A stretch of DNA of 64,000 nucleotides, from positions 391,406,001 through 391,470,000 of the forward strand of contig CM097883.1 of the NCBI GenBank assembly GCA_044892505.1, in the 5' to 3' direction. Shown in pieces: positions 43,903-61,836 of this stretch. Both the position numbers and the translations under genes were made by a program. This DNA comes from Schmidtea nova (Eukaryota). The notes under the pieces are model-generated. The model worked only from the letters and a program-made list of their open reading frames with translations. It was not told the DNA's origin and did no database searches. Within the stretch, counting starts at the first letter, position 1, and each line of letters starts with the position of its first letter.

Positions 43903-44001
43903 TGATACTTTTGATAGTCTATATTTGTTTTTAATAAAAACTCATTGTATATTTTAAAATTTGTTTTTATAGTTGATATTCTTAAGTTTTAAATTATATG
44001 T

Positions 44002-44708
44002 AGTAGGCAGTTATGTGGAGCATGAGTCATCGCAGAACAAAGGAAATGACGTCACACAATGGTCATACCTTCGAAGGTGTATGGTGTGTGCTCAACCTTC
44101 AAGGGGTCAAAATCCTTCAAATATTTTTAAACATTACAAGTTATATATCAAACAAAAGGTAATTGAGATTTGAGTATGATGGTCAACCCTCGAAGGTGGG
44201 TGGTCGACCCTTGAAGGGTCCAAGACTCAAAATTTTAAAAACTATATAATATATGTATCAAACAAAAGGTAATTGAAGGGTGCACACAATGGTCATACCC
44301 TTAAAGGGTCCAAGGTTCAAATTTTTAAAACTATATAATATGTATATCAAACAAAAGGTAATTGTGAGATGAGTGTGTGTGTTACAATTTGCCAGACGAG
44401 TGTGTGTTACAAATCCTTATTCAAACCTTATAATATACATATCATTCGAAAGGTAATTATGGTGTGTGTGTGTGTGTTATAATTTTTTCTATTTCCTACC
44501 TGAATTACAACAAAGACATTGCAATCCATGTGCAACGAAACAAAGACTAATAAAACTTGTAATAATAAATTTTGCACACGTATCTTAGTGTTTAATAAGG
44601 ATCACAGTACGCATTGAACGCGCGTGGAACGCGCGTTCTTCTCCTCTTGTTGTTTAAGACAAATAACAGTACGCATTGAACGCGCGTGGAACGCGCGTTC
44701 TTCTTCTC
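44002..44708 (+). repeat. Left TIR (sequenced part; continues into gap 44709-45275)
   Basis: Reverse complement of 59483-60587 except for a 396-bp deletion and one fewer GT unit. The sequenced lengths (707 and 1105 bp) differ by exactly 398. Confidence 0.95.
44605..44708 (+). repeat. 62-bp tandem repeat containing a CpG-rich hairpin, running into the gap
   Basis: Units start at 44605 and 44667. Each has GAACGCGCGT-GGA-ACGCGCGTTC. Mirrored at 59483-59586. Confidence 0.9.
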
Positions 44709-45377
44709 NNNNNNNNNNNNNNNNNNNNNNNNNNNNNNNNNNNNNNNNNNNNNNNNNNNNNNNNNNNNNNNNNNNNNNNNNNNNNNNNNNNNNNNNNNNN
44801 NNNNNNNNNNNNNNNNNNNNNNNNNNNNNNNNNNNNNNNNNNNNNNNNNNNNNNNNNNNNNNNNNNNNNNNNNNNNNNNNNNNNNNNNNNNNNNNNNNNN
44901 NNNNNNNNNNNNNNNNNNNNNNNNNNNNNNNNNNNNNNNNNNNNNNNNNNNNNNNNNNNNNNNNNNNNNNNNNNNNNNNNNNNNNNNNNNNNNNNNNNNN
45001 NNNNNNNNNNNNNNNNNNNNNNNNNNNNNNNNNNNNNNNNNNNNNNNNNNNNNNNNNNNNNNNNNNNNNNNNNNNNNNNNNNNNNNNNNNNNNNNNNNNN
45101 NNNNNNNNNNNNNNNNNNNNNNNNNNNNNNNNNNNNNNNNNNNNNNNNNNNNNNNNNNNNNNNNNNNNNNNNNNNNNNNNNNNNNNNNNNNNNNNNNNNN
45201 NNNNNNNNNNNNNNNNNNNNNNNNNNNNNNNNNNNNNNNNNNNNNNNNNNNNNNNNNNNNNNNNNNNNNNNNNNNCAGCTTATAAAAACTTACAAAAACT
45301 AATACAAAAATTTTACAAATAAAAGCAATTAAAAAACGATAACAAATAAATTAAGAAATCTATTGAATGAAAATAAA

Positions 45378-48300
45378 TCAACCAAAATAATTATGATCAT
45401 TGTTAAAATCATCAATAAAATCATCTGGATTGTCTGGATCATTTCCTTCATTATTTTGATTCAAAACTGGAGAGATTGGTTGATTGAAAGGTTCTGGATC
45501 ATCATTTGGTTCATCAATAAAGGTATCACCCACCCGAAAATTGCCATAGGCTAAACTTTTATTTTTTGTTACCCAAAACCTTTTGTCGTCCATATTTGTC
45601 AGTGCTTTTTTGTTGTTCTTAATGCTATATAGCTGATGATTTTTGCTGCATATTCTAAATTGCGGTACCTTGTAAATCCTATTGTTCACATAACAATCAA
45701 GATACGACTCATGACTCAGTCCAGTATCTTTCAAATCAACTCCCTTAGCCTTCATGTTACTCGCATCACCCAACAAACTGTAACATTTAGGCCTCAGGAA
45801 CACCCACTCCTTATATAATAGTCCTTTACTCTCGTCTTTGAACTTGCCAATGACAGAGTCAAGGTTCCTATTATATAACGGATGATTAGGGTCATAATTG
45901 GATGTGTCAAGCAACTGGTCTCTAATCATAGCAGCTAAAAGAATGTCAAGACTACAATTTTTAATCTCCAAAAAGAAGGAATCAGTGTCTCCAGCAACTA
46001 TATTAATCTGACAGTTCAATTCATTACGATATTTTTGTAACTCATTGTACTGCAACTCGTACATTCTCAGTTTGGATAAATCTAGTACAGTTTGCCCAAT
46101 GTAACTAGGTCTATCCAAACACACTGATTCCTTCCTAAGCAAAACCGAAATCAAATCGTCGTCTATCCTTGTGGTTTTCCTAAATGCCGGTTTTGAGGCA
46201 TATGTGATTAGTTTTTGTGCTGAATTGCAGAGTCGCAGATTAATTCGTTTTTTCAAGTTCTCAACAGTTTTTCCATACAAACTGTTGTTGAGCAACTTGT
46301 AGTAATTTTTGTCTAATTTACTTGTCGATGTTGCTCTTAACTGTGTGTTTGTGTCAATGTAATTTTTAAATACATAGCTTTGGTCGTATTTAATTGCCCT
46401 ATGTATTTTTGTTACAAGTGCACCTAAATTAATAAAAATCTGTAGAAGCCTCCAATGAAGAACGTAGTTCTTTTTGGAGTTGTGCGTTAGCAACAGCTTC
46501 TTAACTTTGGAAAAAGGAGCGCACATCTTTTCAGCGGCAATTGGAAAATCATCCAATTTATCGTGAATAGATGTCGGTATTTCTAAATCTACTTCTATGG
46601 TATAACCATAGCTAAGCAAACTTAGATCTACCGTAGCGCATTCAATTAATAAATTAGTTAATAAATTATCATCGGTCACCCATTGAAAATTACCCTCGGG
46701 TAGCTTTTGTGATAAAGCCCATCCATACAGGTTGTTGATATCGATATACAACAACTCTGTATCCGCACTACTTTTAACATAATGTTTGTTTACAAAAGTA
46801 AGCCCCCCACGAATTCCCCCTTCAAAGAAATTGTACATTTCCATGTCGGTCAATAATGTTATCGGTTTCTCAAGAGTCATCAAAGCCGAACTCCAACTCA
46901 TACCGGGAATCCCCAAGAAATTAAGGGGCTCAAGTTTGTTATGGGCAATGCTCTTAGCCCGAAATTGCTGAAAAAAGTCAGCCAGTAAAAACACATCAAG
47001 TTTTAGATACACCATCATGTAATCCAAAAGGCAAGTACATGATGTTTCTCGCCATATTACTTTAGCCAACTCATATTCCTCTGCGTCAACACCTTTCCAA
47101 ATTGGTGGTAATTCTGATGTTGACCTTAAAACATCTAAAGAGGTCGCAACATCGTAAGGAAAAATTCCCTTGCTGTTAATTATAGTTCCCCTGAACTCTG
47201 AAGATGTTAATGGCAAAGATGTTAGTGTTGCTACAGCACCTTTTAATGATTCAGACACAAATTGACAAGAGTCAATAAATTTCACAGACAAAGAATCAAT
47301 ATTAGCAAAAAGTGAAAGAAACTTCTCGCTAGTAATTGGAATGCAGCTTATATTCCAAGATGTATACCGAGATAAGCCAAATTTGAGGATATGATGGAGA
47401 TCATACCCTCTCAAATTATGAAAGACAACAGGCAAAGTGTGTCTTATTTGCCTGCTAAGATTACACTTTTTGCAAGCTGCACCAATAAATTGACCTGAAA
47501 AATGGTCGTGATCTCTAACTGGTTCTACTAACAGTTTCTTGCACAAATGACAGTTTGTGCTGTTATTAAAAGTTATTTGATCATCGCCAGTGAAGATCAT
47601 TTTCTTATTGTAATTTTTATAAAAATAGGGACTTACAATATATTTACTTATATCTTCAATTTCATGAAGAAATTGATCTACACAATCAAGCCCTAAAAAT
47701 GATTTGTAGATTTTTTCACCGGTGAAGTTATTAATTAGTAATAAGCCAGCTGCAATCGGTAAATGTTTTTGATAATATTTGGTGTCCTTCGGTAAAATTG
47801 CCTCAAAATCGGCAAAAATGACAAAGGGAGGAGTGACAGTTTTCTTCCAATCAGTAAATTCAAGCAAAGGGTTTTTAGGCAAAGTGTACAAAGTTGTACC
47901 CAATTGATTATTTTCACAAAGACCACGATGACGATTAAAACAATCATCAGTTCGGAAACCGTTAAGACACCGAGGACACCATTGACAGCAAATACGGACA
48001 GAAGTTATTGATGCATTTCTGCAATTTAAGAATCGATTTAAATCAGTTATGGCGGTGTAATGAAAATTTTTATTATTATCTAAAAGCAGTAAGTTAATTG
48101 GTGTTCCTCCTACAACCTTACTTTTATAAATTATATCTATAAAGGGATGTTTCATTATAGAGCTGGCATTACTTATATCAATCAACGCAGTTTCATCATA
48201 CGACAAAACATTAATTGCATACCCTGGATTTTGTCGTTCAAACTTAGAAATATTTCCAAGTTTCATGGGCATATCAGCAGCATCATACTTTAGTTGTGAA

Positions 48301-49304
48301 AGGTTATAAGAGGAAGGAAGATGTCTCAACTCAGGAATAATACTATCATATTTTAAAATAGCCAAAATGCTATAAAGAAAGCAAAACTCATCCTGATTTT
48401 CAATATTAACAATGCAGTATTTACGAAGTAAAGTTTTAGGAGTTGCGAGAAATCGACGACCACTTAAGCGACTAATTTCACTATATTTTGTTAATAAAAA
48501 ACTTATATATTCAATTTTATGTATCGTCCAATTTGAACCCTTTTCGTTAATTTTAATAATTTTTTCGTTTAAAAGAGCAATACCTTCATCAATGAAGGTA
48601 TCACTCATAGTTCTGGCAGAATTTGAGATTACGAAAGATTGGAGTTCGTCATCTTTCTCAAATTCTACCTTTATACAAAACTGAATTTTTACAGAACTCA
48701 TCTGCGAAACTGTTAAATTTAATTTATTAATTAAAATATCTGGAACAACAACAATTTTTAAGTTTAAGGATGATACATCCATTTTTAAAATTATGTGGGA
48801 ATCGTTTAAGTCGGAAATAACCTCGACATTTCCGCATCCTACTTGATTAATTAAATTATTATTAATTATTTGATCATCATCATCACTGATTTCGATGATT
48901 TCATCGTCACTTATTTCAATTATTTGATATTTTTGAGGAATTGAATCCTCATTAAAACTTTTTCTTTTATTATTATTTAAATTATTAATTAAAATATTTA
49001 GGTTATTATTTAATTGTTTATTAATATTAATTAATTCATTTATTTGATTGTTATCAAGCTCTTTGTTAATATTTAGTACTTGGTCTGGTATTTGTTGATT
49101 AATTATTGTTTGTTGGTTAAGTGTTTGTTGGTTATGTGTTGAATATAATTTATTAAAAAGTGATTTTTTAGATGTCATATACTGACTCAAATGAATACAG
49201 TGTTTTTCATAAAATTGTATATATGGTATGTTATCAATAATATTACAATTAGGGCATAAAAGGTGGGTGATACCGTTATACTTATAAGAGTAATACTTTT
49301 CCAT
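45378..49304 (-). CDS. pPolB: Protein-primed family B DNA polymerase (1308 aa) with N-terminal TP/vOTU-like region and an EndoVII/HNH-like insertion
   Basis: Exonuclease motifs IFADFEA and FHNLRGYD. Polymerase motifs YIDINNLYG, KLLNNSLYGK and AGDTDS. CHLC...VRDHDHFSG...ACKKCN insertion. QDEFCFLYSI...FHYTAI is a candidate Cys-His protease dyad. Confidence 0.97.
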   Translation of the reverse strand: MEKYYSYKYNGITHLLCPNCNIIDNIPYIQFYEKHCIHLSQYMTSKKSLFNKLYSTHNQQTLNQQTIINQQIPDQVLNINKELDNNQINELININKQLNNNLNILINNLNNNKRKSFNEDSIPQKYQIIEISDDEIIEISDDDDQIINNNLINQVGCGNVEVISDLNDSHIILKMDVSSLNLKIVVVPDILINKLNLTVSQMSSVKIQFCIKVEFEKDDELQSFVISNSARTMSDTFIDEGIALLNEKIIKINEKGSNWTIHKIEYISFLLTKYSEISRLSGRRFLATPKTLLRKYCIVNIENQDEFCFLYSILAILKYDSIIPELRHLPSSYNLSQLKYDAADMPMKLGNISKFERQNPGYAINVLSYDETALIDISNASSIMKHPFIDIIYKSKVVGGTPINLLLLDNNKNFHYTAITDLNRFLNCRNASITSVRICCQWCPRCLNGFRTDDCFNRHRGLCENNQLGTTLYTLPKNPLLEFTDWKKTVTPPFVIFADFEAILPKDTKYYQKHLPIAAGLLLINNFTGEKIYKSFLGLDCVDQFLHEIEDISKYIVSPYFYKNYNKKMIFTGDDQITFNNSTNCHLCKKLLVEPVRDHDHFSGQFIGAACKKCNLSRQIRHTLPVVFHNLRGYDLHHILKFGLSRYTSWNISCIPITSEKFLSLFANIDSLSVKFIDSCQFVSESLKGAVATLTSLPLTSSEFRGTIINSKGIFPYDVATSLDVLRSTSELPPIWKGVDAEEYELAKVIWRETSCTCLLDYMMVYLKLDVFLLADFFQQFRAKSIAHNKLEPLNFLGIPGMSWSSALMTLEKPITLLTDMEMYNFFEGGIRGGLTFVNKHYVKSSADTELLYIDINNLYGWALSQKLPEGNFQWVTDDNLLTNLLIECATVDLSLLSYGYTIEVDLEIPTSIHDKLDDFPIAAEKMCAPFSKVKKLLLTHNSKKNYVLHWRLLQIFINLGALVTKIHRAIKYDQSYVFKNYIDTNTQLRATSTSKLDKNYYKLLNNSLYGKTVENLKKRINLRLCNSAQKLITYASKPAFRKTTRIDDDLISVLLRKESVCLDRPSYIGQTVLDLSKLRMYELQYNELQKYRNELNCQINIVAGDTDSFFLEIKNCSLDILLAAMIRDQLLDTSNYDPNHPLYNRNLDSVIGKFKDESKGLLYKEWVFLRPKCYSLLGDASNMKAKGVDLKDTGLSHESYLDCYVNNRIYKVPQFRICSKNHQLYSIKNNKKALTNMDDKRFWVTKNKSLAYGNFRVGDTFIDEPNDDPEPFNQPISPVLNQNNEGNDPDNPDDFIDDFNNDHNYFG

Positions 49305-49981
49305 TATGACGTGGCAGTTATTATGGGAAGTACTGTTGCAGTATTGCGGGTATAAATTGCCTATATAACAGGAAATAAAATATTAAATTCAAGTATAAAA
49401 AAAAAAAAAAAAAAAAAAACATTTTATTTACCTTTAACATAATACGTAATGATTTACAAAAACTATTACGTATTATATTAAGTTTAAATAAAAAATATTT
49501 AAAATTTTTAAAATAACTTTTGATAATATTGTGACTGTAAATTATTAAAAATAATATGTTATCATAAAATTATCGTTCATAAAAAGGTTTCTTAATCATT
49601 AATCATTTATTTTTTCATATATATAAATCATTTTTTATAAATAAATCATTTTATTTTCATAAATAAATAAAATAAATAATTTCTTCTTCATAAATAAATG
49701 GTCATAAATAAATCATTTTCATAAAAATATATAAATCATTTCATCTTTAATAAATTCATAAATTCATAAATGTTTAAAATATTATTATTGTTTTATAATA
49801 ATATTATCATTTCTAATATTATTATTATAAAATAATAAAATATTTACTTTTACTTCTTAAAATTCATAACGCATTTAATTTTCATAAAATACATAAAATT
49901 TTAAAAATATTATTATTATTTTTTAATAATATTATCATTTCTAATATTATAAATTAATAAAATATTTAATAATATATTTTC

Positions 49982-50419
49982 TTAGATATAATATAAAAAA
50001 TCATCAAAATATTTACATTTTTTCAATCCAATCGTTAATCCCGCAGCATTAAAATTTGATCCATTGCAAGTAGAACCAGCTGCATTCGGGGCATAAAAAC
50101 TAGAACCAGCAGTAATTTGAGCATCAGTTTGGCCGTAATTTATTACATTATTAATTTCTAAAGATTTTTGTCAATTAAAATTAACAATAATAAAAGTAAA
50201 TATACCATTGACTCTATTTCCGATGACTCCAGTTCCAATGACTCCAGTCCCAGTGGCAGATCCGTTGTTATTTAAGATGTTGTTCGCGATATTGTTCGCT
50301 ATATTAACTTCTAATAATATTAAAAATAAATAAGTAAATAAATAAAAAGTAAATTTACCATTGACTCCAGCTCCGTATGATTTTCGAGCAACTCGTCCTT
50401 GATTCATTAAATTATTCAT
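49982..50419 (-). CDS. Predicted 3-exon orphan protein (113 aa), N/G-rich, with an N-terminal ARKS motif
   Basis: Exons 50359-50419, 50206-50310 and 49982-50157, separated by two 48-nt GT-AG introns. Splicing removes the in-frame TGA at 50171 and gives MNNLMNQGRVARKSYGAGVNEVNIANN...GLKKCKYFDDFLYYI. Confidence 0.65.
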
Positions 50420-50479
50420 TTTTGTTTAAAAGACTTGATAATAGATTTTGTGATTAAAAGTGACGAAATAATACAAGTA

Positions 50480-50645
50480 TAGACTATATAAAGCAGATAA
50501 TTTCAAGTTTTATTAACCATCCAATCAGAATCGAGATAGGATAGGGAAATAAATGCACACATACTGCATGTTTGTTTATGTCACGATAGTTGTTATGTGA
50601 CTACATAAAGACATGTAAGTTCACGACCCCATGTGTCTTTATGTC
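50480..50645 (-). promoter_or_regulatory. Putative Pol II promoter of the spliced orphan
   Basis: TATATA at 50485-50490, CCAATCAGAA at 50521 and AAAGACATG at 50607. Confidence 0.45.
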
Positions 50646-50779
50646 GTGACTTTATCGACAAAGGCTTTGTTGATGTCATCATGCTTTATGATATACATGT
50701 GACGAATAATTTAATAATATTTATAAAATAATAATAATAATTACATTTATAAAATAAAGAGATGATAATAATATTTATA

Positions 50780-50780
<1 letters not shown>

Positions 50781-50864
<84 letters not shown>
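50781..50864. repeat. (AAT)n microsatellite inside the Polinton
   Basis: Pure AAT run of more than 25 units downstream of the nuclease-like ORF. Confidence 0.95.
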
Positions 50865-50869
<5 letters not shown>

Positions 50870-50911
50870 CATTAATACACATTATTAAAATTTATTAAAA
50901 TAACAATACAT

Positions 50912-51328
50912 TTATTGCTTTAAATAATCAATAACTGCACTCAAACATCCTTTATAGGCACACATACTATGATCCCTATATGGACATGATATATTATCTG
51001 GAACATCTTCAATTTCTTTAAAATTATATTTAATTAATCTCAATTTCGGGAAATATTTCTTCAAGACTTGGAGTTTATCAGCATCAGTGACATAGAAAAT
51101 AGCACTAGTATCTTCAATATCATTCATAATACATGTTGGGCAAAAGTAATCTTGTCCTTCATACCATTCTAATCGATCGGGAATTCCAATTCCAGCCCAG
51201 AACGGTAAATCATTGTATATATAATACTTTGGTTTAAAAATATTATTAACATTCATAATACATAATTCTTTAATAATTAATCCTCCCATATCATTATAAC
51301 CGTAAATATCAATAAAATAACAAGTCAT
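50912..51328 (-). CDS. DEDD/DnaQ-fold, Maelstrom-like putative nuclease (138 aa)
   Basis: N-terminal YFIDIYGY...IIKEL resembles ExoI with DxE changed to DxY. C-terminal CPYRDHSMCA resembles a C-H-C zinc site. Assigned by motif recall only. Confidence 0.5.
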   Translation of the reverse strand: MTCYFIDIYGYNDMGGLIIKELCIMNVNNIFKPKYYIYNDLPFWAGIGIPDRLEWYEGQDYFCPTCIMNDIEDTSAIFYVTDADKLQVLKKYFPKLRLIKYNFKEIEDVPDNISCPYRDHSMCAYKGCLSAVIDYLKQ

Positions 51329-51361
51329 TTTTTCACAACAAAATTTATTAAACTAAATTGT

Positions 51362-51738
51362 TTATAACATAGATTTTAGCCATGCAAGGCAATGTTGACC
51401 ACAAGTGGTCGAGAATGGATGTTGATACCGAATTCTATTATATACAATCGGTTTACCCATAGTCTGCAATTTTCGAACTAGTAAATTGGGATAATAATAT
51501 CCAAATGGATCAAATACATGTATTCGATCCGGTTTCACGTAAACAGCAATCCAATGCTCACCGCCCAAAGTAGATGTCTGAGTATTTACAATGATGGCCT
51601 GATTAATATCTAAATACGGAATTTTATCTAGTGGATAAACTCCAATAAATTGATTTCCCAATAGTTTTTTACCAAGTCTATATACCTGAACAGAACTAAT
51701 TTAATTAAGTATTTTAGTAATTAAAAAACTTACTCCAT
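51362..51738 (-). CDS. PRO: Adenain-like cysteine maturation protease (112 aa after splicing)
   Basis: GEHWIAV, FDPFG and CGQHC supply the catalytic H, D and C. The start requires ATG GA at 51738-51734 and a 38-nt GTAAGT...TTAG intron (51696-51733), giving MDSVQVYRLGKKLLGNQFIGVYPLD. Confidence 0.9.
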
Positions 51739-51786
51739 GACAATTATTTCTATCTTTTGGTTCATTTATACCTGCACAAACTAATA

Positions 51787-51859
51787 ATGTTTGAGCTCTG
51801 CTCAAAACATTAATTTTTGAGCTCTGCTCAAACTAATAATGTTTAAGCTTTGCTTAAAC
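51787..51859. other. Three tandem stem-loops overlapping and following the MCP stop codon
   Basis: TTTGAGC-TCT-GCTCAAA twice (51790-51806, 51816-51832) and GTTTAAGC-TTT-GCTTAAAC (51841-51859). Confidence 0.7.
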
Positions 51860-53074
51860 CAGTACAGTTCGATTCGCAGTAATTTGTACTTCATTTTCAA
51901 ACAATCCATATATTATTACATGAACCGGTTCGTCAATGGCTTTACCAAATTTGATATCTAATCGTAAATTCCCATTTTGCGGGATTTGACTTTGATTCAA
52001 ATCAAAATCAGGAGCAAGAACAAAAGTAAAGAATGGATAACTTGATTTAAATTCATCGAGACTTATACCACAATTCAAGTTTTTATCTAAATATCCTAAA
52101 TTTCTAACAAGACTTTGCATATATGTGGCACTAAAATTATCATTTTCAAAATCTTGAGTATAAGTTTCTCGATAATCGGTATTTTTCGATAATGATAATG
52201 AAGTTACATTAAAGTGTTTGAATGTAGATGAAGATTCAGCATAAGACCCGTTATATTGATTTTCTGTTTGAAAAGCTACAAGAATGAAATTAGGCATTCT
52301 TCTATCTCCAAATATTTGCTCCTTGTAAAATGATGATGCACCTTTACCAATTGCAAACGATACGATTTCTTTGGATTTTATCGGATAAATTGCATGTTTG
52401 CTATTTAAACCAATTTGATGACCGGCCAAAACTGAAGATTCACACCGAACTCTTCGAACCATTAATTTAGCGTCTACTAATTGGAGTATTGGTTTCCCAG
52501 TTGCTGATTTCAATGATAATGCAGAATCAGATCGCTTCAATCTAATATGTACATTAACTCCGGGAAGTAAGTATTTAGGTTGATCCATAAAATCGAGTTG
52601 TAATGATGAACACATGTTAAAAAGTTTCGATCCCTTGATCCACTTTTTTCTATCGTCACTTGCCGCATATCCCATTGGAGTAAGACAAGTTTCTTTTGAA
52701 TCATTCGTATAATTTAAAATAGTTTCGATTATTGCCTTGTGTGCATAAGTATTGTTTCCACCCTCGATTTTTATATTATTAAATCCAAGAATTGCATCTT
52801 TGAAAAGTGTATGAAACAGGTAATTATTAGGTACTACATCACTCGCATCAACTAAGTTCTTTTTATCTTTATCTACAACTTTGACCGTAACGGATAATAA
52901 CGTATCGTTCAAATCCAAATATTCGGTTTGTGAACCATTAATGTAAAATTCCACATCATTTCTACTATCTGTAATAGAATTCATTGGAAACACATCTTCA
53001 AACACCCCATATTCAATAACTGCTTGGGGGCTTGGTCGATCAAAAAGACATAATTCAGATTTACCGCAAATCAT
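51854..53074 (-). CDS. MCP: Double jelly-roll major capsid protein (406 aa)
   Basis: ELCLFD...P....VEFYI.GS..EYLDLNDTLL at the N-terminus and GNLRLDIKF...V.IIYG at the C-terminus are typical of Polinton MCP. Size and position fit. Confidence 0.9.
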   Translation of the reverse strand: MICGKSELCLFDRPSPQAVIEYGVFEDVFPMNSITDSRNDVEFYINGSQTEYLDLNDTLLSVTVKVVDKDKKNLVDASDVVPNNYLFHTLFKDAILGFNNIKIEGGNNTYAHKAIIETILNYTNDSKETCLTPMGYAASDDRKKWIKGSKLFNMCSSLQLDFMDQPKYLLPGVNVHIRLKRSDSALSLKSATGKPILQLVDAKLMVRRVRCESSVLAGHQIGLNSKHAIYPIKSKEIVSFAIGKGASSFYKEQIFGDRRMPNFILVAFQTENQYNGSYAESSSTFKHFNVTSLSLSKNTDYRETYTQDFENDNFSATYMQSLVRNLGYLDKNLNCGISLDEFKSSYPFFTFVLAPDFDLNQSQIPQNGNLRLDIKFGKAIDEPVHVIIYGLFENEVQITANRTVLV

Positions 53075-53451
53075 TCTTCAAATATAGTTCCATGACCTTT
53101 CATTCGTTTGTTTATACGTTTTCGTTTACGTCTTGGTCCTACTGGTACAGGTTCCGGTTCATTTTTTGTAAACATATTTGTAATTGAAGGAATCATTTGT
53201 GTTACAGCAGGTATAGCTTTATTAACTGCGGCCAAAGCATTTGTTTTCAATGACGGTAATAGTTTATTATCTTTCATGATTACATCCTTGGCAGTATTGA
53301 ATCCAAAACTACCTAGTCGCTTAAGTATTGGAAGTGCAAATCTTCCAATAGTTTTTAACCAACCTGATCCATACTGTTTACCTACAAAATACGGTAATTC
53401 GCCACCGGTTTGGCTATTACTGTACAATGAAATTATATCGGGATTACTCAT
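53071..53451 (-). CDS. Small virion protein with an amphipathic helix and basic tail (pVI/PZ-like, 126 aa)
   Basis: QTGG and QYGSG candidate protease sites, helix GWLKTIGRFALPILKRLG, and NLS-like PRRKRKRINKRMKG. Its stop overlaps the MCP start codon (ATGA). Confidence 0.7.
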   Translation of the reverse strand: MSNPDIISLYSNSQTGGELPYFVGKQYGSGWLKTIGRFALPILKRLGSFGFNTAKDVIMKDNKLLPSLKTNALAAVNKAIPAVTQMIPSITNMFTKNEPEPVPVGPRRKRKRINKRMKGHGTIFEE

Positions 53452-54490
53452 TTAATCTACGAAAATGTAATGTCAAATGCGTTTTTGAATCTTTTGGAAA
53501 ATTTATTAATTTACCACTATCGTCACGTATATTTATTTCTATATTGTTTATACATGAGGTAGAAATAGGTAAGTACATTGGATTATCCATTACTATTTGT
53601 ACAACTTCATCCTGTTCATATTTTTCGATCCATACCGATTTCAGTAGAGGAACCAGAGTATCACCGACAATTATTGGTTCAATAATGTTACTGTAAATGA
53701 ACATTTGTTGATGATGAACAAGTATTTTAGGTTTCACAGTCCCATCGACAAGGTTTCGGTCTCTATACGTTTGTTTAGCTAATCCTAAAGTATTGACCAA
53801 GTTTTTATCAAATGTAACTTCACTAATATTATCATTGAGACAGAATTGGAACCATTTATTAATCTCTAGAGTTTTAAAGATATGGGAACAATTGAATGAT
53901 AAATATTTAGATAAATCTTCCAGTTGCATTATATACAAATCATTTGCAAATGTAAATGTATCTTCAATTTCTGCATCATATGATATTGTCACTGTAAAAT
54001 CTTCTTTCAAATAACTATTCGGTTCAAATAATATGAACTTTAATTGATATTCTTTTAGTGTACTTACAATTTTAAGTTGATCACTTCCCATTCGCTTGGC
54101 TTCTTCAATATTTTTAAATGTAATTGTATATGGAGTAAAATCACAATTAATATTTAAGCAACCATTGCTGAAATACATACTACAATGAACATTCAAATTT
54201 TGGTTAGGAATAGTATATATCCTTTCAAAATTGTTGATGATGAATTGACCACTGCATGTTCTATTTTCAATTCTTTTGTAATCAATCTTACATTGACTAT
54301 AAAATGGAAATGTATTGTACACAAACGTGAAATCTTGTAATGCAACTTCCCAATTACCATCTAAATAAATTGGATTTTGAAGATTGACCATGAATTTACT
54401 GGCTTGATTGTCTGGATGTATTAGGGGACAGCTATTACTTGGTAATATAGTATAGAAATTCACTTTACTAGGTCTTTTGACGATATCCAT
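53444..54490 (-). CDS. mCP: Minor capsid protein (penton, single jelly-roll, 348 aa)
   Basis: FYTILPSNS...F.VNL..PI.L.GNWEVAL and IYSNII...VGD..VPLL...YLPI...IEINIRD...LHFRR. Confidence 0.88.
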   Translation of the reverse strand: MDIVKRPSKVNFYTILPSNSCPLIHPDNQASKFMVNLQNPIYLDGNWEVALQDFTFVYNTFPFYSQCKIDYKRIENRTCSGQFIINNFERIYTIPNQNLNVHCSMYFSNGCLNINCDFTPYTITFKNIEEAKRMGSDQLKIVSTLKEYQLKFILFEPNSYLKEDFTVTISYDAEIEDTFTFANDLYIMQLEDLSKYLSFNCSHIFKTLEINKWFQFCLNDNISEVTFDKNLVNTLGLAKQTYRDRNLVDGTVKPKILVHHQQMFIYSNIIEPIIVGDTLVPLLKSVWIEKYEQDEVVQIVMDNPMYLPISTSCINNIEINIRDDSGKLINFPKDSKTHLTLHFRRLNE

Positions 54491-55507
54491 GATGGTTCTT
54501 TATATCCATGCCACTTTACATAGTATTGTTTATCCTTACCTACCACTTTAGTTTTCAATATTTTTTGAATTCTAAATATTGTGGGAGGGGGAATAACTTG
54601 TAATTCTTGTTCATAGAATTTCCCACTGACTATATTGTTATCAGAGTCAGAAATAGTATACATGACAGGATTCTGGACTGTGTTGACTTTCGATATTTTA
54701 AATACCTCATCACTCCAATTACTATCAAAATTTTTAATGAATGGCGATGCACTAATTTTACTAATTCGAACATGATCACCTATTTTATATTTTGGTTTCT
54801 TTATTTTTGTATCATTCAAAATATTTTCAGTATCAACTACTTCAGCAGGTTTCTTTCCATTTATACCTCGATGAGCAGAATGATTATAACTATGAATCAT
54901 TTGTGGTAAAACATTAATCCATGTTTTATTCCCTTGATGCACAAAATATTTTTTGAGACGATCTCGTAATGTACGATTAAATCTTTCAACATGAGCGGCT
55001 TTGAATTGAGAGAATACTGAGTAATGATTGATTCCCTTTATAATTTCTTTGACTTTGCTATTGTAAAATTCCTTACCTAGATAAATAATTATCATTTTAT
55101 AAAATATTTATTAGCTTACCTAAATCAGTTTGTAAATTAGTTGGACGTCCACTTTTGAACATTGTTTTGATTGCGATTGCCATATCATTAGCAGATTTAG
55201 ATTTTACCGGAATAGCTCGAGCGAAACGACTGTAAACATCAATACATGTTAAAATATACTTGTATCCCTTGTTAATTTTTGAATACGGAATCATTTCCAT
55301 CAAATCCATTTGCCACAAATCATTAATTCTATATGTTTTATATGCTCGAGTCGGAAACCGTTTCAGCATCGGTTTGTTTAGACTGTATGCAAGTTGCCCC
55401 GATAACCAACTTTGAGTCTGTTTTTTCGAATTCGATACATTTTTGCTTAGCTTTTCGACTCCACCGAAACCTGCTTCGTGTTTTGGGTTGGTCCAAATCT
55501 TCTCCAT
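54460..55507 (-). CDS. INT: Retroviral-like DDE integrase with a C-terminal chromodomain (334 aa, two exons)
   Basis: WQMD (D), QTDLG|KEF (D) and HVERFNRTL (E). Chromodomain IQKIL...YYVKWHGY..PSW. A 43-nt GTAAG...CTAG intron (55077-55119) joins the two ORFs in frame, 1005 nt in total. Confidence 0.93.
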
Positions 55508-55562
55508 TACAACAAGAAGATTTAAAGTTTAAATTAAGATTAGGCAATGATTGTCCCATTGT

Positions 55563-56105
55563 TTATGACTGTTTTCCTAATAAACCAGCACCTCCTAATA
55601 GTGATAATGCTAATGGTAACAATGCTGCAATAAACCCTCCTTGTTGTTTATATATTATTTTACGCATTAATTTTCTATTTTTGGTTTTTACAAGTGATAA
55701 CAATGGTTTCTTGTGTTTGTTCAAAACTCTTCTATTAGATTCACTTATATTGATTTTACCTCTAACAACTTTAATTAAAATCATTAGTAAATCGTCAATA
55801 ACGTAATTAGGAAACGATTGTAAAATACTCATTCTTCTAATACTAGGGGCTTTAAGTAATGCATTGAAAAATGGGAAACTACGATGATGTAGTTGTTTTG
55901 GATTTGGTTTGTAAGTATTTTGAATACGATTACTTTTTGGGATATTATCAATAAGTAATTTTTTAGATGGTGTATAACTAGTTTTTGAAACTGGTTTCTT
56001 TGTTTTCTTTGTAAATACTTTCTTTGAAACTAATTTCTTTCCCGGTTTCTTCATTTTTCTAGCCTTTATCAAGCGCTCAAACTTTACTCTAGATTTCATT
56101 AACAT
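55563..56105 (-). CDS. Lys/Arg-rich core protein with an adenovirus pX-like hydrophobic tail (180 aa)
   Basis: Highly basic N-terminus. C-terminal QQGG|FIAALLPLALSLLGG resembles adenoviral pX GGFLPALIP. A homologue is present in relic B. Confidence 0.7.
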   Translation of the reverse strand: MLMKSRVKFERLIKARKMKKPGKKLVSKKVFTKKTKKPVSKTSYTPSKKLLIDNIPKSNRIQNTYKPNPKQLHHRSFPFFNALLKAPSIRRMSILQSFPNYVIDDLLMILIKVVRGKINISESNRRVLNKHKKPLLSLVKTKNRKLMRKIIYKQQGGFIAALLPLALSLLGGAGLLGKQS

Positions 56106-56125
56106 GATTGATAATATACATCTAG

Positions 56126-56749
56126 TTAACTTTGTTTATAAACCATGGCTCCTTCCTTGTTGAAAATATCTGTTCTAACTCTTAAATCATCACTACATTG
56201 TTGCGTGAAATCAAGAAAAAGATATCCATGAGGGGCTTTTGTGGCATCTTGGAATGCTTCAATCAAGAAATTACGATTAGAAGGGTATGCTTGTCTTGCA
56301 AGAAAATCAATAACTGTTGCGTCTCTAGGATTTTTGAAAACAGCAAGATATTGAACATTTAAATTACGAGTTCGATGACTGCCGCCCTGATGAAATAAAT
56401 TCTGAGTTATAAAAATGACTGTAACACCCTTGTGTCTAGCGATTTTTGTAAATAAATTATTAAAATCCTTTTCTTTATTTGCTTCTTGGTACAAATCATC
56501 AATAATAATCACATCCCCTTCTCTTAATCTTGATGACCAATTTTTATCGAAACCTTTTATTATAGTCATTTTTATTTTACAAAATTGATCTTGAGTCATT
56601 CCATGTTCATCATCCGCACCCCTATGCCAATAAATTTTATTAAACTTTGATTTGAATAATTTTGATTGTAATAATTTACAAACAAATAAAGTTTTTCCAC
56701 TCCCGCTCGGTCCAACAATTTGAAACACTGCATCATTTCTTAATTCCAT
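56126..56749 (-). CDS. ATPase: A32/FtsK-HerA-family genome packaging ATPase (207 aa)
   Basis: Walker A GPSGSGKT, Walker B IIIDD and the RH...FITQ motif. Confidence 0.95.
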   Translation of the reverse strand: MELRNDAVFQIVGPSGSGKTLFVCKLLQSKLFKSKFNKIYWHRGADDEHGMTQDQFCKIKMTIIKGFDKNWSSRLREGDVIIIDDLYQEANKEKDFNNLFTKIARHKGVTVIFITQNLFHQGGSHRTRNLNVQYLAVFKNPRDATVIDFLARQAYPSNRNFLIEAFQDATKAPHGYLFLDFTQQCSDDLRVRTDIFNKEGAMVYKQS

Positions 56750-56846
56750 TTTTCAAATTTTATTAATTTATTATTATTGTTTATATTTGTTTAAAATAAT
56801 AGTTGTTTTTATTATTGTCATTTTTAAAAAAAAAAAAATTTCAGTA

Positions 56847-57314
56847 ATGATTAGCAACATAAATTATAAGGGTAAGACTGATGTATCTCACATGAATTTT
56901 CCAAATGGGAAACCACAGCAAATTGTTGATAGATGTGGTAAATATCCGATAATATATTTTAAGACCGGGAGATATAGAATTATGGGATGTAAGGAATTTA
57001 TTAGTGATGAAAAAGTAAAGTTTTACAATTTAACAATACAATCAATCACTGTTACGACAGACTTGGGATTTAATTGTAATTTAAATGATTTGGCTAAATT
57101 AATAGAATGTGTTTACGAACCAGAAATATTTCCAGCTTTGAGATATACAAAATATAACCCCATGTGCGTTAATATATTTGCAAGCGGTAAAGTAGTTATA
57201 TTAGGTTTAAAAAACAAAGACTATTTAAATATAGTTGATATTATTATTAATGATGTAAAATCAATTATTGAAGATAAAGCCTTTGCCGATTTCATATTAT
57301 CGTGTGACTCATGA
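56847..57314 (+). CDS. TATA-binding-protein-like protein (155 aa from ATG 56847)
   Basis: Two-repeat TBP pattern: ISNI...IYFKTGRYRIMGCK and IQSI...YEPEIFPAL.Y...NIFASGKVVILGLK. The canonical TBP repeat 2 reads IQNMV...YEPELFPGLIY...LIFVSGKVVLTGAK. Confidence 0.85.
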   Translation: MISNINYKGKTDVSHMNFPNGKPQQIVDRCGKYPIIYFKTGRYRIMGCKEFISDEKVKFYNLTIQSITVTTDLGFNCNLNDLAKLIECVYEPEIFPALRYTKYNPMCVNIFASGKVVILGLKNKDYLNIVDIIINDVKSIIEDKAFADFILSCDS

Positions 57315-57339
57315 TTGCAATAAATCTACAATATTAATG

Positions 57340-57460
57340 CACGATTCTGATTGGTTCAGTGTGTATATCGATAATAAAGACATGTCATGCATGCTCGAAT
57401 TTGATTGGTTCAGTGTGTAATATTTTGTACATTCCTTGTGTTTCTATCGTATATATACAA
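57340..57460 (+). promoter_or_regulatory. Putative Pol II promoter
   Basis: GATTGGTTCAGTGTGTA twice (57349, 57403), AAAGACATG at 57376 and TATATATA at 57450, upstream of ATG 57498. Confidence 0.5.
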
Positions 57461-57497
57461 TTAACATTTTGCTATCATTTATATTCACAATCACAAA

Positions 57498-58136
57498 ATG
57501 CCAGAGATAATGAAATATGGTAAATTTTAAAGTTTACTATTTTTTCATTTTTATAATTTTTTCATTTTAGAGAAATTAATTTCCGTACTTTACGGTAAAC
57601 TTGAGGAAATCTATCCGATGCTGATGCCGAAGCTGACCTATACAGCACCGGAGCTCTTTCCCTACAAAATTCAATGCCTGACTGGGATCGATATTCATCA
57701 GGTCTTACTGGATCATCTGGCTAATCGGGACAGTGAAATGCCATATATGGCGGAGCACATCTTGTGCGCATACCAATGCGGCCATTGTATGGACCGTATA
57801 CAGAAGTATCGGGTCTGGATGTTACGAAACGCCCTCCACCAATTTGAAATGGATTCCAAGAAATTGGAAAAAATTGACGAGGAGGACGAGATTCCAAAGC
57901 AATGGACAAATTCAACACCCGAAGCGTCGGATGATGAAAAATCGCCAGATTGGGATAAATCGCATGATTGCGATAATTCACCTGATCATTTAGATGAATT
58001 GCCTGAAATACAATTATCTTTTGGTTGTTCGACTGCTATGGATCAATGCGACGAAAATAAGTGTATTGAATCGCCTCAATCGCCTGATTGCGATCAATGC
58101 CATCGCAAGCTTTCAAATATAGAGATTGCAGAATAA
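57498..58136 (+). CDS. Conserved Polinton orphan protein (about 195 aa, two exons) with Cys/His clusters and an acidic SP-rich tail
   Basis: Exon 57498-57519 and a 51-nt GT-AG intron (57520-57570) join in frame to the 172-aa ORF. A homologue with an AG acceptor at a similar position is present in relic B. Confidence 0.7.
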
Positions 58137-58559
58137 ACATTATTAATGTTATATGTTTTTATTTGTGTATTTTCTTTTTATGTAGACACATTTTATGTAG
58201 TGACATTTTATGTATTCACATTTTATTATTTAATAAATCTTTTATCATTGTTATTTTAGTTTTTTCTGTTTCAGTTTTTTATTTTGTTAATGAGTTATTT
58301 ATTAAGTTTTTAAATAATTTTAAAATAATTTTTATTTAGTTTTTTGAAATGAAATAGGTTTACTAATAATTTATATTAAGTTTAAAATAAGTTTTATTTA
58401 AATGAATTATGTTTAATAGTAATTTTTATAAATAAAGACAATTTCAATAATAAATACACATGCATGAATTAATTACAACAAAGTCATGTATTCCAAAATC
58501 AGTTTCAACAAAATAAACATACATGTATAATTAACACACGACAGACATGTAGCAAATAC

Positions 58560-58705
58560 GTGTGCAACAAAGACATGCATGCAACAAGTACTAATGTATG
58601 CAACAAAGACATGCATGCATGCATGTAACAAAGACTTGCATAACATGTGCAGTTAGAATGCGTCATTTTGATTGGACAAAGGCATTACTCATCACTATAA
58701 ATACA
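58560..58705 (+). promoter_or_regulatory. Putative Pol II promoter
   Basis: AAAGAC(A/T)TG three times (58569, 58605, 58630), TGATTGG at 58669 and TATAAATA at 58696, upstream of ATG 58740. Confidence 0.55.
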
Positions 58706-58739
58706 AAGACATTTTTCAGATGTTGTCACAATTTCAAAA

Positions 58740-59156
58740 ATGCCAGCACGTAAATCAACTTATGACATCAGTGAAGAAAGAAAAATCAATAATGAAGTGA
58801 AACCAGTACAAATGTATTACGATTACAAAATTTATTTCCTGGTTCAAGAAATACCATTTCGTTTGTCGTATCCAGTGAAATTAACAAAGTCATTGTATGA
58901 CAATTTAGCTGCAAATCTAAATAAAGAAGATGTTGTTGCACTAAATAAAGTTTTATTCAAAATCAATAACAATTTAAGTTGCAAGGAAACTATATGGATT
59001 AACAACCGGAAAACTCGTTTCCATGATGCTTTCCAATCTATCGAATACAAGGATCAAGAAAATTGGTTTATTACCATAATCATTCAGGGATATAAAATCG
59101 ATACAAAAGATGTTATAACTCCAATTTGGAGAATTGACAGTGCACGATATGCATAA
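58740..59156 (+). CDS. Orphan protein (138 aa) beginning MPARKST; C-terminus possibly OB-fold/SSB-like
   Basis: Clean ORF with a good upstream promoter. ITIIIQGYKI...ITPIWRI is a beta-rich pattern that only loosely recalls viral SSBs. Confidence 0.7.
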   Translation: MPARKSTYDISEERKINNEVKPVQMYYDYKIYFLVQEIPFRLSYPVKLTKSLYDNLAANLNKEDVVALNKVLFKINNNLSCKETIWINNRKTRFHDAFQSIEYKDQENWFITIIIQGYKIDTKDVITPIWRIDSARYA

Positions 59157-59482
59157 CTGTTATTTTATAAATGTTATATTCAATAAAATTTAGTAATTTC
59201 AATTTTAGTTTTTGATTGTTTGAATTTTTATAAGNNNNNNNNNNNNNNNNNNNNNNNNNNNNNNNNNNNNNNNNNNNNNNNNNNNNNNNNNNNNNNNNNN
59301 NNNNNNNNNNNNNNNNNNNNNNNNNNNNNNNNNNNNNNNNNNNNNNNNNNNNNNNNNNNNNNNNNNNNNNNNNNNNNNNNNNNNNNNNNNNNNNNNNNNN
59401 NNNNNNNNNNNNNNNNNNNNNNNNNNNNNNNNNNNNNNNNNNNNNNNNNNNNNNNNNNNNNNNNNNNNNNNNNNNNNNNNNN

Positions 59483-60587
59483 GAGAAGAAGAACGCGCGT
59501 TCCACGCGCGTTCAATGCGTACTGTTATTTGTCTTAAACAACAAGAGGAGAAGAACGCGCGTTCCACGCGCGTTCAATGCGTACTGTGATCCTTATTAAA
59601 CACTAAGATACGTGTGCAAAATTTATTATTACAAGTTTTATTAGTCTTTGTTTCGTTGCACATGGATTGCAATGTCTTTGTTGTAATTCAGGTAGGAAAT
59701 AGAAAAAATTATAACACACACACACACACACCATAATTACCTTTCGAATGATATGTATATTATAAGGTTTGAATAAGGATTTGTAACACACACTCGTCTG
59801 GCAAATTGTAACACACACACTCATCTCACAATTACCTTTTGTTTGATATACATATTATATAGTTTTAAAAATTTGAACCTTGGACCCTTTAAGGGTATGA
59901 CCATTGTGTGCACCCTTCAATTACCTTTTGTTTGATACATATATTATATAGTTTTTAAAATTTTGAGTCTTGGACCCTTCAAGGGTCGACCACCCACCTT
60001 CGAGGGTTGACCATCATACTCAAATCTCAATTACCTTTTGTTTGATATATAACTTGTAATGTTTAAAAATATTTGAAGGATTTTGACCCCTTGAAGGTTG
60101 AGCACACACCATACACCTTCGAAGGTATGACCATTGTGTGCACATCGGTATTACCTTTCGAATGATGTATTACACACAAGGTTTGAAAAATCTGAAGGTT
60201 TTTGACCCTTTGAAGGTTAAGGACACACCATAGACCCTCGAGGGTATGACCATTGTGTGCACCTCTCAAAGACCTTTCGAATGATACCCTTGTTTGAAGG
60301 TTTGACCTTATTTGACCTTTGGAAATTCAAATTCAAAATTTGAATTTGAAATGAGTCATCGATGACGTCATAAAATTCAAATTTGAAATGAGTCATCGAT
60401 GACGTCATCGATGAGCCATGCCGATGAGTCATCGATGAGTCATGCCGATGAGTCATCGATGAGTCATCGCGATGAGTCATCGATGACGTCATCGATGAGT
60501 CATAAAAAAAAATTTCCTAACCCCCCCGGGGGGGTGACGTCATTTCCTTTGTTCTGCGATGACTCATGCTCCACATAACTGCCTACT
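59483..60587 (-). repeat. Right TIR (sequenced part; continues into gap 59235-59482)
   Basis: Contains the 62-bp units, degenerate repeats of about 90-120 bp, the AP-1/CRE array and the terminus. Confidence 0.95.
60352..60566. promoter_or_regulatory. Array of 9 AP-1 (TGAG/CTCA) and 4 CRE (TGACGTCA) consensus sites with a C7G7 palindrome
   Basis: TGAGTCA at 60352, 60389, 60425, 60436, 60449, 60460, 60473 and 60496; TGACTCA at 60560; TGACGTCA at 60363, 60400, 60484 and 60535; CCCCCCCGGGGGGG at 60521-60534. Confidence 0.75.
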
Positions 60588-61836
60588 ATATGTGGATATT
60601 TTGTGATACAAAAATAAGAATCGAGATTATCCAAGAAAACTTTGATATCATTGAGAGACCTAAAGATTGTCTTTCCATCAGATCCAATGCGTATCGTTCT
60701 TTGAGAAAAATAGAGCATTGTCACATTGGACAAGTTTCCTACCAATAAATCCGCAACCTGTCTCGTTTGACTGATATTGAATACGAACATATCATACACA
60801 AGAATAAGTCGATTTGCTTGCTATATTTAATTTGTTTAACTATTCAGAATGATTGGCTTTATCAGTTATATTACCAGATAAATATTCAAAAGAATCGAAT
60901 TTAAATTTTTAAAATTTTTTTGAAACCAAATTCTTTTAAAATCTACACCAATTTGAACTTTACTCGAATTTGAAAAAAACAAATAATTCAAAAAAACAAA
61001 TCTCCTAATTCCTCGCAATTCCAATTTATTTTTCTTCCACTTTGTCTATCACATAATAAATCTCTTAAACTATTTTATTCCAATTTTACAAATTTCAATT
61101 AATTCTCAAAAATTAAAAAATTCGATACGATCAGTGCTTTTTTTGTAGAAAAAAAGTGTTGGAACTCATCGTTATTTGTCTTTATATGTCAAAATATGAA
61201 ATTAGCTACCAAATTATAAAATAAATTTTATAGGACCCAAACTATAAAACTATAAACTCACTTTTTTTTCGTGTTTTCCAATTTTCGCTAGACAAATCAT
61301 CTCGACTCGTTTCCTTGCTACTAGTGTCTACATCTGAACATCTTCCCCGAAGTAATCACAAATCAACATACCTTAAAGGATCGAAGAGTGTGAGTGGTGG
61401 TCCCGCTAATCTGATAAATAACAGCGATGAAACTGTTTTGGTTATCAATGAAGCTCTTGCTGGAGTGATGATCAGATTCATCCGTAAAAATCCCACTATT
61501 AGACACATAGTGCAGCCAGGCTTCCTTTTTCGAAAGCAGAGCCATTTGTTTTGGCACAAAAAGTTAAAAATGTAAAGTGTGTAAAATGTAAAACCACATG
61601 AGATTCTTTTTAATAATCACAGGTTTTTGAGAATGAAAGGTCTTATTTAACCGTGACAGATTCGTATTGTTTGAAATAAGATAAANNNNNNNNNNNNNNN
61701 NNNNNNNNNNNNNNNNNNNNNNNNNNNNNNNNNNNNNNNNNNNNNNNNNNNNNNNNNNNNNNNNNNNNNNNNNNNNNNNNNNNNNNNNNNNNNNNNNNNN
61801 NNNNNNNNNNNNNNNNNNNNNNNNNNNNNNNNNNNN

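Follow-up and report, generated by a model that had tools for sequence, protein, structure and literature searches.

A stretch of 64,000 nucleotides (nt) of Schmidtea nova (contig CM097883.1 of assembly GCA_044892505.1, positions 391,406,001 to 391,470,000 of the forward strand), hereafter the window, harbors a Polinton/Maverick element that encodes a shortened homologue of the TATA-binding protein (TBP). The element, whose features are numbered from the first letter of the window, is a Polinton: it is bounded by long terminal inverted repeats (TIRs) and an identical 6-bp target-site duplication (TSD), and it carries an rve integrase gene, broken by one frameshift, together with genes for an adenain-like protease, a packaging ATPase, and a double jelly-roll capsid protein (Table 1). 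A preliminary description of the locus, made from the sequence alone, had placed a 155-aa open reading frame (ORF) with the strings YEPEIFPAL, NIFASGK, and IYFKTG inside these boundaries and divergent from the structural cassette. All three strings were present in the translation, the gene was enclosed by the ATATGT hexamers and the AG...CT termini, and the ATPase gene started on the minus strand (56749), 97 nt from the start of the TBP gene, with the 406-aa ORF of the same cassette corresponding to the capsid protein.

The TBP ORF extends from an ATG at 56847 to a TGA at 57312-57314. The ORF list opened it at a TTG (56787); 33 relatives share a Met-(I/L)-x-N-I-N-Y start at the 56847 ATG, and this common Met indicates that 56847 is the real start. 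An upstream exon, considered on account of the acceptor-like TTTCAG preceding the ATG, was rejected in view of the relatives' shared Met and the mere 97 nt left to the neighboring gene. Pfam family PF00352 matched residues 62-127 (E=2.8e-15, 56.4 bits against a cut-off of 22.9), and a phmmer search of PDB sequences returned 35 TBP chains and nothing else notable, the best being an archaeal TBP at 1.6e-20. The sequence-level match covered residues ~57-139 only, which could be aligned to either repeat of canonical TBPs with ~25-35% identity to the cellular repeats. The ORF is, in this way, a true TBP homologue, and it is encoded by the Polinton itself.

Besides the intact element, two relics in the window (A and B) retain TBP remnants beside the ATPase, so that the ATPase/TBP adjacency occurs in the same divergent order in three diverged copies, the proteins of which are only 40-48% identical. 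The claim that the homologues in both relics mark a lineage trait was thereby sustained, as it was by a large family found elsewhere. The Nei-Gojobori comparison of the intact copy with relic A, made over 95 codons and with dS near saturation, yielded pN 0.335 and pS 0.645, that is, a rough dN/dS of ~0.3, in the direction of constraint.

Table 1. Positions of the Polinton, its genes and sites, and the two relics within the 64,000-nt window.
Feature	Position	Strand	Evidence or remark
Left TSD, ATATGT	43996-44001	.	identical hexamer at both element ends
Polinton/Maverick element, 16,586 bp, termini AG...CT	44002-60587	.	TIR pairs, TSD, gene content
Left TIR	44002-44956	.	inverted-repeat pairs; enters N stretch 44709-45275, left unfilled
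Protein-primed-type family B DNA polymerase candidate (pPolB), 1308 aa, single open frame	45378-49304	-	Exo and Pol motifs spotted by eye
ORF138, 138 aa, ATAAACAA motif upstream	50912-51328	-	no Pfam match
ATAAACAA copies	51358, 53108, 53544, 54526, 55559, 55644, 56132 (span 51358-56139)	-	
Adenain-like cysteine protease ORF, 99 aa	51362-51661	-	Pfam Peptidase_C5 E=8.3e-7, 29.3 bits vs cut-off 21.3
Double jelly-roll major capsid protein, 406 aa	51854-53074	-	AF2 pLDDT 88.9, pTM 0.88
ORF126, 126 aa, capsid module	53071-53451	-	
ORF348, 348 aa, capsid module; minor capsid/penton candidate	53444-54490	-	fragment retained in relic A
rve integrase with C-terminal chromodomain, two frames (one frameshift)	54460-55507	-	Pfam rve E=2.3e-9 (first ORF), Chromo E=1.6e-4 (second)
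ORF180, 180 aa, basic	55563-56105	-	retained in relic A
A32/FtsK-type packaging ATPase, 207 aa, divergent neighbor of the TBP gene	56126-56749	-	Pfam Pox_A32 E=3.9e-6; further P-loop families also matched
Divergent intergenic region between ATPase and TBP starts, 97 nt	56750-56846	.	
ATAAACAA ahead of ATPase	56777-56784	-	in the 97-nt intergenic region
Shortened TBP, 155 aa	56847-57314	+	N lobe residues ~1-50, C lobe residues ~57-153
AATAAA, possible polyadenylation signal	57319-57324	+	5 nt past TBP stop; frequent by chance at ~30% G+C
ORF of 172 aa, acidic, Cys-rich	57618-58136	+	TBP-gene strand
ORF of 138 aa	58740-59156	+	TBP-gene strand; TGATTGG and TATAAAT upstream
Right TIR	59235-60587	.	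contains N stretch 59235-59482
Right TSD, ATATGT	60588-60593	.	
Relic A, inverted vs intact copy	38047-40644	.	fragments of ATPase, ORF180, integrase, ORF348, pPolB
Relic A TBP remnant	38047-38337 (outer bounds)	-	N-terminal part deleted, aligned part stop-free, 48% identity
Relic B	17385-17947	.	
Relic B ATPase N-terminal fragment	17385-17567	-	
Relic B TBP remnant, divergent	17619-17947 (outer bounds)	+	at least 2 frameshifts, aligned pieces stop-free

Architecture and relatives of the short TBP

An AlphaFold (AF2) model of the short TBP, built on an alignment of 34 relatives, reached a pLDDT of 95.1 and a pTM of 0.84, and TBPs made up the whole of its best 44 Foldseek matches in the PDB, the alignments taking in both lobes (157-178 columns) with TM (query) of up to 0.71. 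The TBP fold was thus borne out by model and Pfam alike. The two-repeat architecture attributed to the ORF stood in part: the C lobe (~57-153) forms in the model a complete TBP repeat, with its strand-helix-strands-helix order, and a reduced N repeat is recognisable, whereas the two complete tandem repeats of canonical TBPs (S1-H1-S2-S3-S4-S5-H2 twice, giving a ten-stranded saddle) are not present. According to DSSP on the model, the N lobe consists of four strands (residues 2-10, 25-28, 35-38, and 42-48), and ahead of residue 79 no helix attains a length of four residues; relative to a TBP repeat, both helices and one strand are gone. The two-lobed fold still aligns with whole TBPs.

At the sequence level, Pfam, phmmer against the PDB, and the family profile against the PDB gave matches to the C half only. 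A hidden Markov model of the C repeat produced weak second matches (E 0.02-1) in ~100 relatives, located in S4-S5 of the N half, residues 23-49 matched residues 96-122 in an internal profile comparison (P=2.8e-4), and a full-length profile alignment of the short TBP to a true two-repeat TBP recovered by the search had a probability of 99.7%. The internal match and the full-length alignment, along with the AF2 and Foldseek results, indicate that the N-terminal 56 residues are a reduced repeat.

The alignments also placed individual residues. The short TBP retains three of the four intercalating Phe (F38, F95, and F111), and an invariant Pro, P23, stands at the place of the first Phe of repeat 1 in the profile alignment, in agreement with the earlier observation that one Phe of this repeat had been lost. 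F38 falls on the second Phe of repeat 1 and M46 on its central Thr. In the C lobe, YEPE-x-FP and both Phe were kept, as had been reported, and E91 and E93 align with the YEPE of archaeal and eukaryotic TBPs, whose two acidic residues contact TFIIB/TFB; at the central positions, by alignment, S66 replaces Asn and L119 replaces Thr. In comparison with cellular and archaeal TBPs (PF00352; PDB 2z8u, 1mp9, 1ytb, and 1c9b), to which its C lobe is homologous with E-values down to 1e-20, the short TBP shares a saddle-type two-lobe fold in the model, the C-lobe Phe pair, one N-lobe Phe, and the acidic pair. It differs from them in its length (~150 aa against ~180 aa for the cellular core), in having no N-terminal tail, in being encoded by a mobile element, in the missing N-lobe helices and strand with Pro for one Phe, and in the Ser, Leu, and Met aligned at the central Asn/Thr positions.

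This layout was not restricted to the window. A profile search of 1.84 billion representatives (50% clustering), with no limit on protein length, recovered 3321 proteins at E<=0.001 and, with the stricter limit of E<=1e-30, 59 representatives; the best 150 were mostly of 100-200 aa and matched end to end in a single stretch. A word-indexed search revealed 393 clusters with E<=1e-10, and ENA, Logan, JGI, or MGnify (metagenomes and raw assemblies) was the source of each of the best 120; none of these 120 was an NCBI or UniRef member, and the only names found were automatic JGI labels, 'TATA-box binding protein'. Conservation was counted over 165 full-length members with a median of 152 aa. In the N half, N4 was found in 160, P23 in 161, F38 in 163, and M46 in all 165; in the C half, the counts were 158 for S66, 156 for E91, 163 for both E93 and F95, and 165 for both N109 and F111. 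Residue 119 was Leu in 109 of the relatives, Thr in 27, and Met in 14, and one close cluster comprised 15 near-identical members. The ~150-aa layout is therefore conserved in at least 165 relatives, with strong constraint on both halves. Some longer relatives, of 223-388 aa, showed no further Pfam domain. Three Cys are also frequent in the family, at residues 43 (145/165), 48 (134/165), and 107 (156/165), although residue 43 is Tyr in the window copy; these Cys might form a metal site or a disulfide.

The family appears to travel with capsid genes. When the longest contig listed for each protein was compared between the TBP family and the 406-aa capsid family, seven lengths were identical (10087, 16200, 16321, 17960, 18985, 20066, and 22064 bp), with 0.08 expected by chance, which implies that in at least seven diverged elements the two genes very probably share Polinton-size contigs (10-22 kb). 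The short TBP family may represent an accessory gene that has so far escaped notice and serves as the mark of a Polinton clade.

A shared box upstream of the element genes

On reading the 120 nt ahead of each start codon, it was observed that an 8-mer, ATAAACAA, mostly in the form TATAAACAA, recurred in the element. The window contained 33 copies against 15.6 +/- 4.1 expected, a number reached by no shuffle, and within the element 10/10 copies lay on the minus strand, which is the strand of the genes that they precede. The distance from the first base of the motif to the ATG was 35 nt for the ATPase, 34 for ORF180, 43 for ORF348, 41 for the capsid gene, and 37 for ORF138, with longer distances for the integrase (59 nt) and ORF126 (100 nt). 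In an unbiased 8-mer scan of the -70 to -15 windows of eleven genes, ATAAACAA was the top 8-mer, being present in six of the eleven, and none of 3000 random sets, whether sampled across the whole window or along the minus strand of the element, came up to six. The TBP gene, the two other plus-strand ORFs, and pPolB had no such motif.

Where the motif overlapped the end of the upstream gene it did so in various reading frames, which marks it as a DNA signal and not a protein signal. A role in the polyadenylation of transcripts from the upstream gene was rejected, as the ATPase copy has no upstream gene on the same strand and the ORF138 copy lies ~490 nt beyond the capsid stop codon. The relics repeated the pattern: relic A held four copies, all on the gene strand, and relic B one (17588-17595, minus strand), 28 nt ahead of the ATPase ATG, with the 16-nt block around the ATPase-upstream motif identical to that of the intact copy. 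Two further minus-strand copies, one inside the polymerase ORF (49014-49021) and one in the ORF-poor stretch 49305-50911 (50572-50579), had no obvious start at the usual distance.

The plus strand presented other signals. A 17-nt direct repeat containing TGATTGG (inverted CCAAT) occurred in two copies between the TBP gene and the 172-aa ORF (57340-57415), and TGATTGG was also found upstream of the 138-aa ORF (58669-58700), with TATAAAT at -44. These TGATTGG repeats and the TATAAAT suggest that the plus-strand genes have host-type promoters. As a second promoter class, however, TGATTGG was discarded, since the window held 8 copies against 9.7 expected, with no enrichment. The AATAAA following the TBP stop codon is consistent with a polyadenylated RNA polymerase II (Pol II) transcript of the gene.

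Possible roles of the short TBP

To our knowledge, Polintons have been thought to rely wholly on the transcription machinery of the host. If the element does encode a core-promoter factor and shares a promoter box among its genes, Polintons would have a gene-control layer of their own, and an early/late programme, like that of larger DNA viruses, would be possible in them. In cellular and archaeal TBPs, two Glu of the C lobe contact conserved Arg/Thr of TFIIB/TFB, and the cellular N lobe is the docking site of TFIIA, TAF1, Brf1/2, Mot1, and NC2 (PMC7221094). Judging from the residues and the model, we lean with moderate confidence toward the short TBP being a core-promoter factor of the element's own that brings in host TFIIB and Pol II, by means of which the Polinton would probably start the transcription of its own genes. 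In keeping the adapter lobe and stripping the regulatory one, the short TBP would offer a direct test of the division of labour proposed for the TBP lobes.

According to this proposal, the short TBP would bind the minor groove of AT-rich DNA and bend it in a TBP-like manner, and its conserved C lobe would recruit host TFIIB (or a paralogue) and Pol II. Pfam searches found neither a TFIIB-like nor an RNA polymerase gene among the element ORFs, and the conserved E91/E93 together with the lack of a TFIIB-like ORF fit the use of host TFIIB. The N lobe, without its helices, may have escaped or altered the contacts of host regulators such as TFIIA, TAF1, Mot1, NC2, and Brf. The likeliest targets would be the promoters of the element itself, the best candidate being the TATAAACAA box before the ATPase, capsid-module, and integrase genes. 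Since the TBP gene, the other plus-strand ORFs, and pPolB have no such box, TBP could be expressed first, from a host-type promoter, and would then switch on the morphogenetic genes.

Several points weigh against this proposal. First, the N lobe has lost a strand, its helices, and one Phe, and three central positions that would face the DNA are changed in the alignment, so that DNA binding by the short TBP is an assumption. Second, only circumstantial evidence ties the protein to the motif: the forkhead consensus RYAAAYA (PMC8034652) is matched by ATAAACA, host TBP could read TATAAA by itself as an ordinary TATA box, and the conservation of several motif copies may owe something to codons, since these copies fall within coding sequence. 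Third, the co-residence with capsid genes was deduced from contig sizes and not read off the contigs, and this particular Polinton copy may be inactive because its integrase is broken.

With the usual polarity of TBP, the conserved C lobe would presumably sit over the TATA half of TATAAACAA and the altered N lobe over its unusual AACAA half. The preliminary description had called the protein a specificity-shifted TBP, which is plausible given S66 in place of Asn and L119 and M46 in place of Thr at central positions that, by alignment, face the DNA. Three substitutions in repeat 2 of TBP are known to alter TATA specificity (PMC10005294), and since so few changes in this repeat suffice, the changed central residues of the short TBP could retune its site. 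An early TBP acting on motif-bearing morphogenetic genes would parallel the late-gene TBP mimic of herpesviruses (KSHV ORF24 and its beta/gamma counterparts), which reads a variant TATA and brings in host Pol II (PMC12529657). The parallel is one of function: these mimics are of large size and multi-domain build, and as part of a viral complex they bind Pol II directly; the short TBP had no sequence match to the ORF24/UL87/BcRF1 type, and a weak fold match to betaherpesvirus U58 was obtained (E=0.016, TM 0.39). A more specific form of the proposal, in which a large Polinton clade would possess a private promoter switch, with a minimal 'one-and-a-half-repeat' TBP that retains the lobe for TFIIB docking, has shed the regulator-contact lobe, and specifically reads the TATAAACAA box ahead of the morphogenetic genes, is advanced only tentatively and is, in our judgement, rather doubtful. 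Were such a switch real, small viruses would have their counterpart of the herpesvirus mimic, and nature would show to what extent the TBP saddle can be shortened and still function.

The box could instead be read by a host forkhead protein or by host TBP, while the TBP of the element acts elsewhere, for instance at its own or other promoters, or by bending TIR DNA for replication or packaging. The ATAAACA match to the forkhead consensus and the canonical TATAAA core favor such host readers, the motif is positioned on the ATPase start and not on the TBP start in both copies where it was found between them, and the TIRs hold other palindromes that resemble factor sites. However, a spacing of 34-43 nt before five start codons is more in keeping with a core promoter element than with the site of an upstream activator, and the similarity to TBPs that are true transcription factors, with TFIIB-contact residues kept, speaks for transcription rather than replication. 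On balance, this alternative is considered unlikely.

Less probable still is that the short TBP is a decoy or repressor, holding host TFIIB or TATA boxes in an unproductive state and thereby damping host transcription or quieting the element. A protein stripped of the lobe for TFIIA and other partners that retains the Glu pair for TFIIB could indeed titrate the latter. However, three of the four kinking Phe and the DNA-facing sheet are conserved to a degree beyond the needs of a pure TFIIB trap, the gene has been retained across a large family that travels with capsid genes, and a dedicated shared promoter motif is available to a positive factor. Finally, it is highly improbable that the ORF is a decaying, functionless fragment of a captured host TBP gene, as its length below that of any canonical TBP core, its single Pfam repeat, and the broken integrase of this copy might indicate, because 165 relatives have the same length and the same N-terminal half, with residues close to invariant in either half, AF2 modelled the protein with very high confidence, and an identity of only ~25-35% to cellular TBP repeats is not that of a recent capture.

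Other diverged TBPs have been described. The TBP-like proteins of Nucleocytoviricota are likewise encoded by viruses and were its best matches in a viral structure library, but they have at least 186 aa and are 10-23% identical to it. Giant-virus TBPs have mostly lost the Glu pair and are accompanied by TFIIB-like proteins and RNA polymerases encoded by the viruses (PMC7221094), whereas the short TBP keeps the pair and its element has neither partner. TRF2/TBPL1 is a diverged TBP paralogue devoted to a separate promoter set; TRF2 has two full repeats, but its intercalating Phe are gone and it shows no binding to TATA (PMC10005294), while the short TBP keeps most Phe in a shortened fold.

The preliminary description had known of no TBP in this group, which is not quite the case. 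The Fig. 5 legend of Starrett et al. 2021 (PMC8502044, and likewise its preprint) has the label 'TBP' for genes mapped in midsize eukaryotic linear dsDNA viruses whose PolB is adintovirus-like; these genes likewise belong to Polinton-related elements, and in that legend, within the section on non-animal datasets, they appear as a label alone, unanalysed. It was the only mention of TBP or TATA found in the open-access Polinton/Maverick literature, the terms being absent from the major recent open-access papers on Polintons and polinton-like viruses. Relative to the literature found, it is new that the TBP architecture is shortened, that the family is large and coherent and apparently travels with Polinton capsid genes, that the pair of residues contacting TFIIB has been retained, and that genes of the element share a TATAAACAA box.

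Other genes and repeats in the window

The assignment of the polymerase and capsid genes followed different routes. The 1308-aa ORF had no match in Pfam and PDB sequence searches and is a pPolB candidate by its motifs and context. Its N-terminal extension of ~600 residues gave a weak endonuclease VII-like match (E 0.0014-0.006, under the cut-off), and a Cys-containing stretch in this extension might be a protease-like domain. The capsid protein had no match by sequence in Pfam or the PDB either, and was identified through its AF2 model, for which the best Foldseek matches were the major capsid proteins of iridovirus, PBCV-1, and virophage, with E-values from 1e-16 to 1e-12. The adenain-like protease ORF has no ATG start and may be truncated, broken, or incomplete.

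In the right TIR, nine ATGAGTCAT/ATGACTCAT palindromes and four of the TGACGTCA type form an array at 60351-60567 and are similar to AP-1 and CRE sites, and the left TIR contains only one palindrome of the ATGAGTCAT/ATGACTCAT type and one TGACGTCA (44022-44054); ~390 nt of the right TIR, including the ATGAGTCAT/TGACGTCA array, are unmatched in the left arm. The whole window totaled 11 ATGAGTCAT/ATGACTCAT sites against 0.7 expected and 5 TGACGTCA sites against 0.43 expected, and a further palindrome copy was located at 40717, at the edge of relic A. Besides the Polinton copies, the window is rich in repeats, among them a retrotransposon RNase H fragment on the minus strand (13345-13734; RT_RNaseH_2, E=6e-25).

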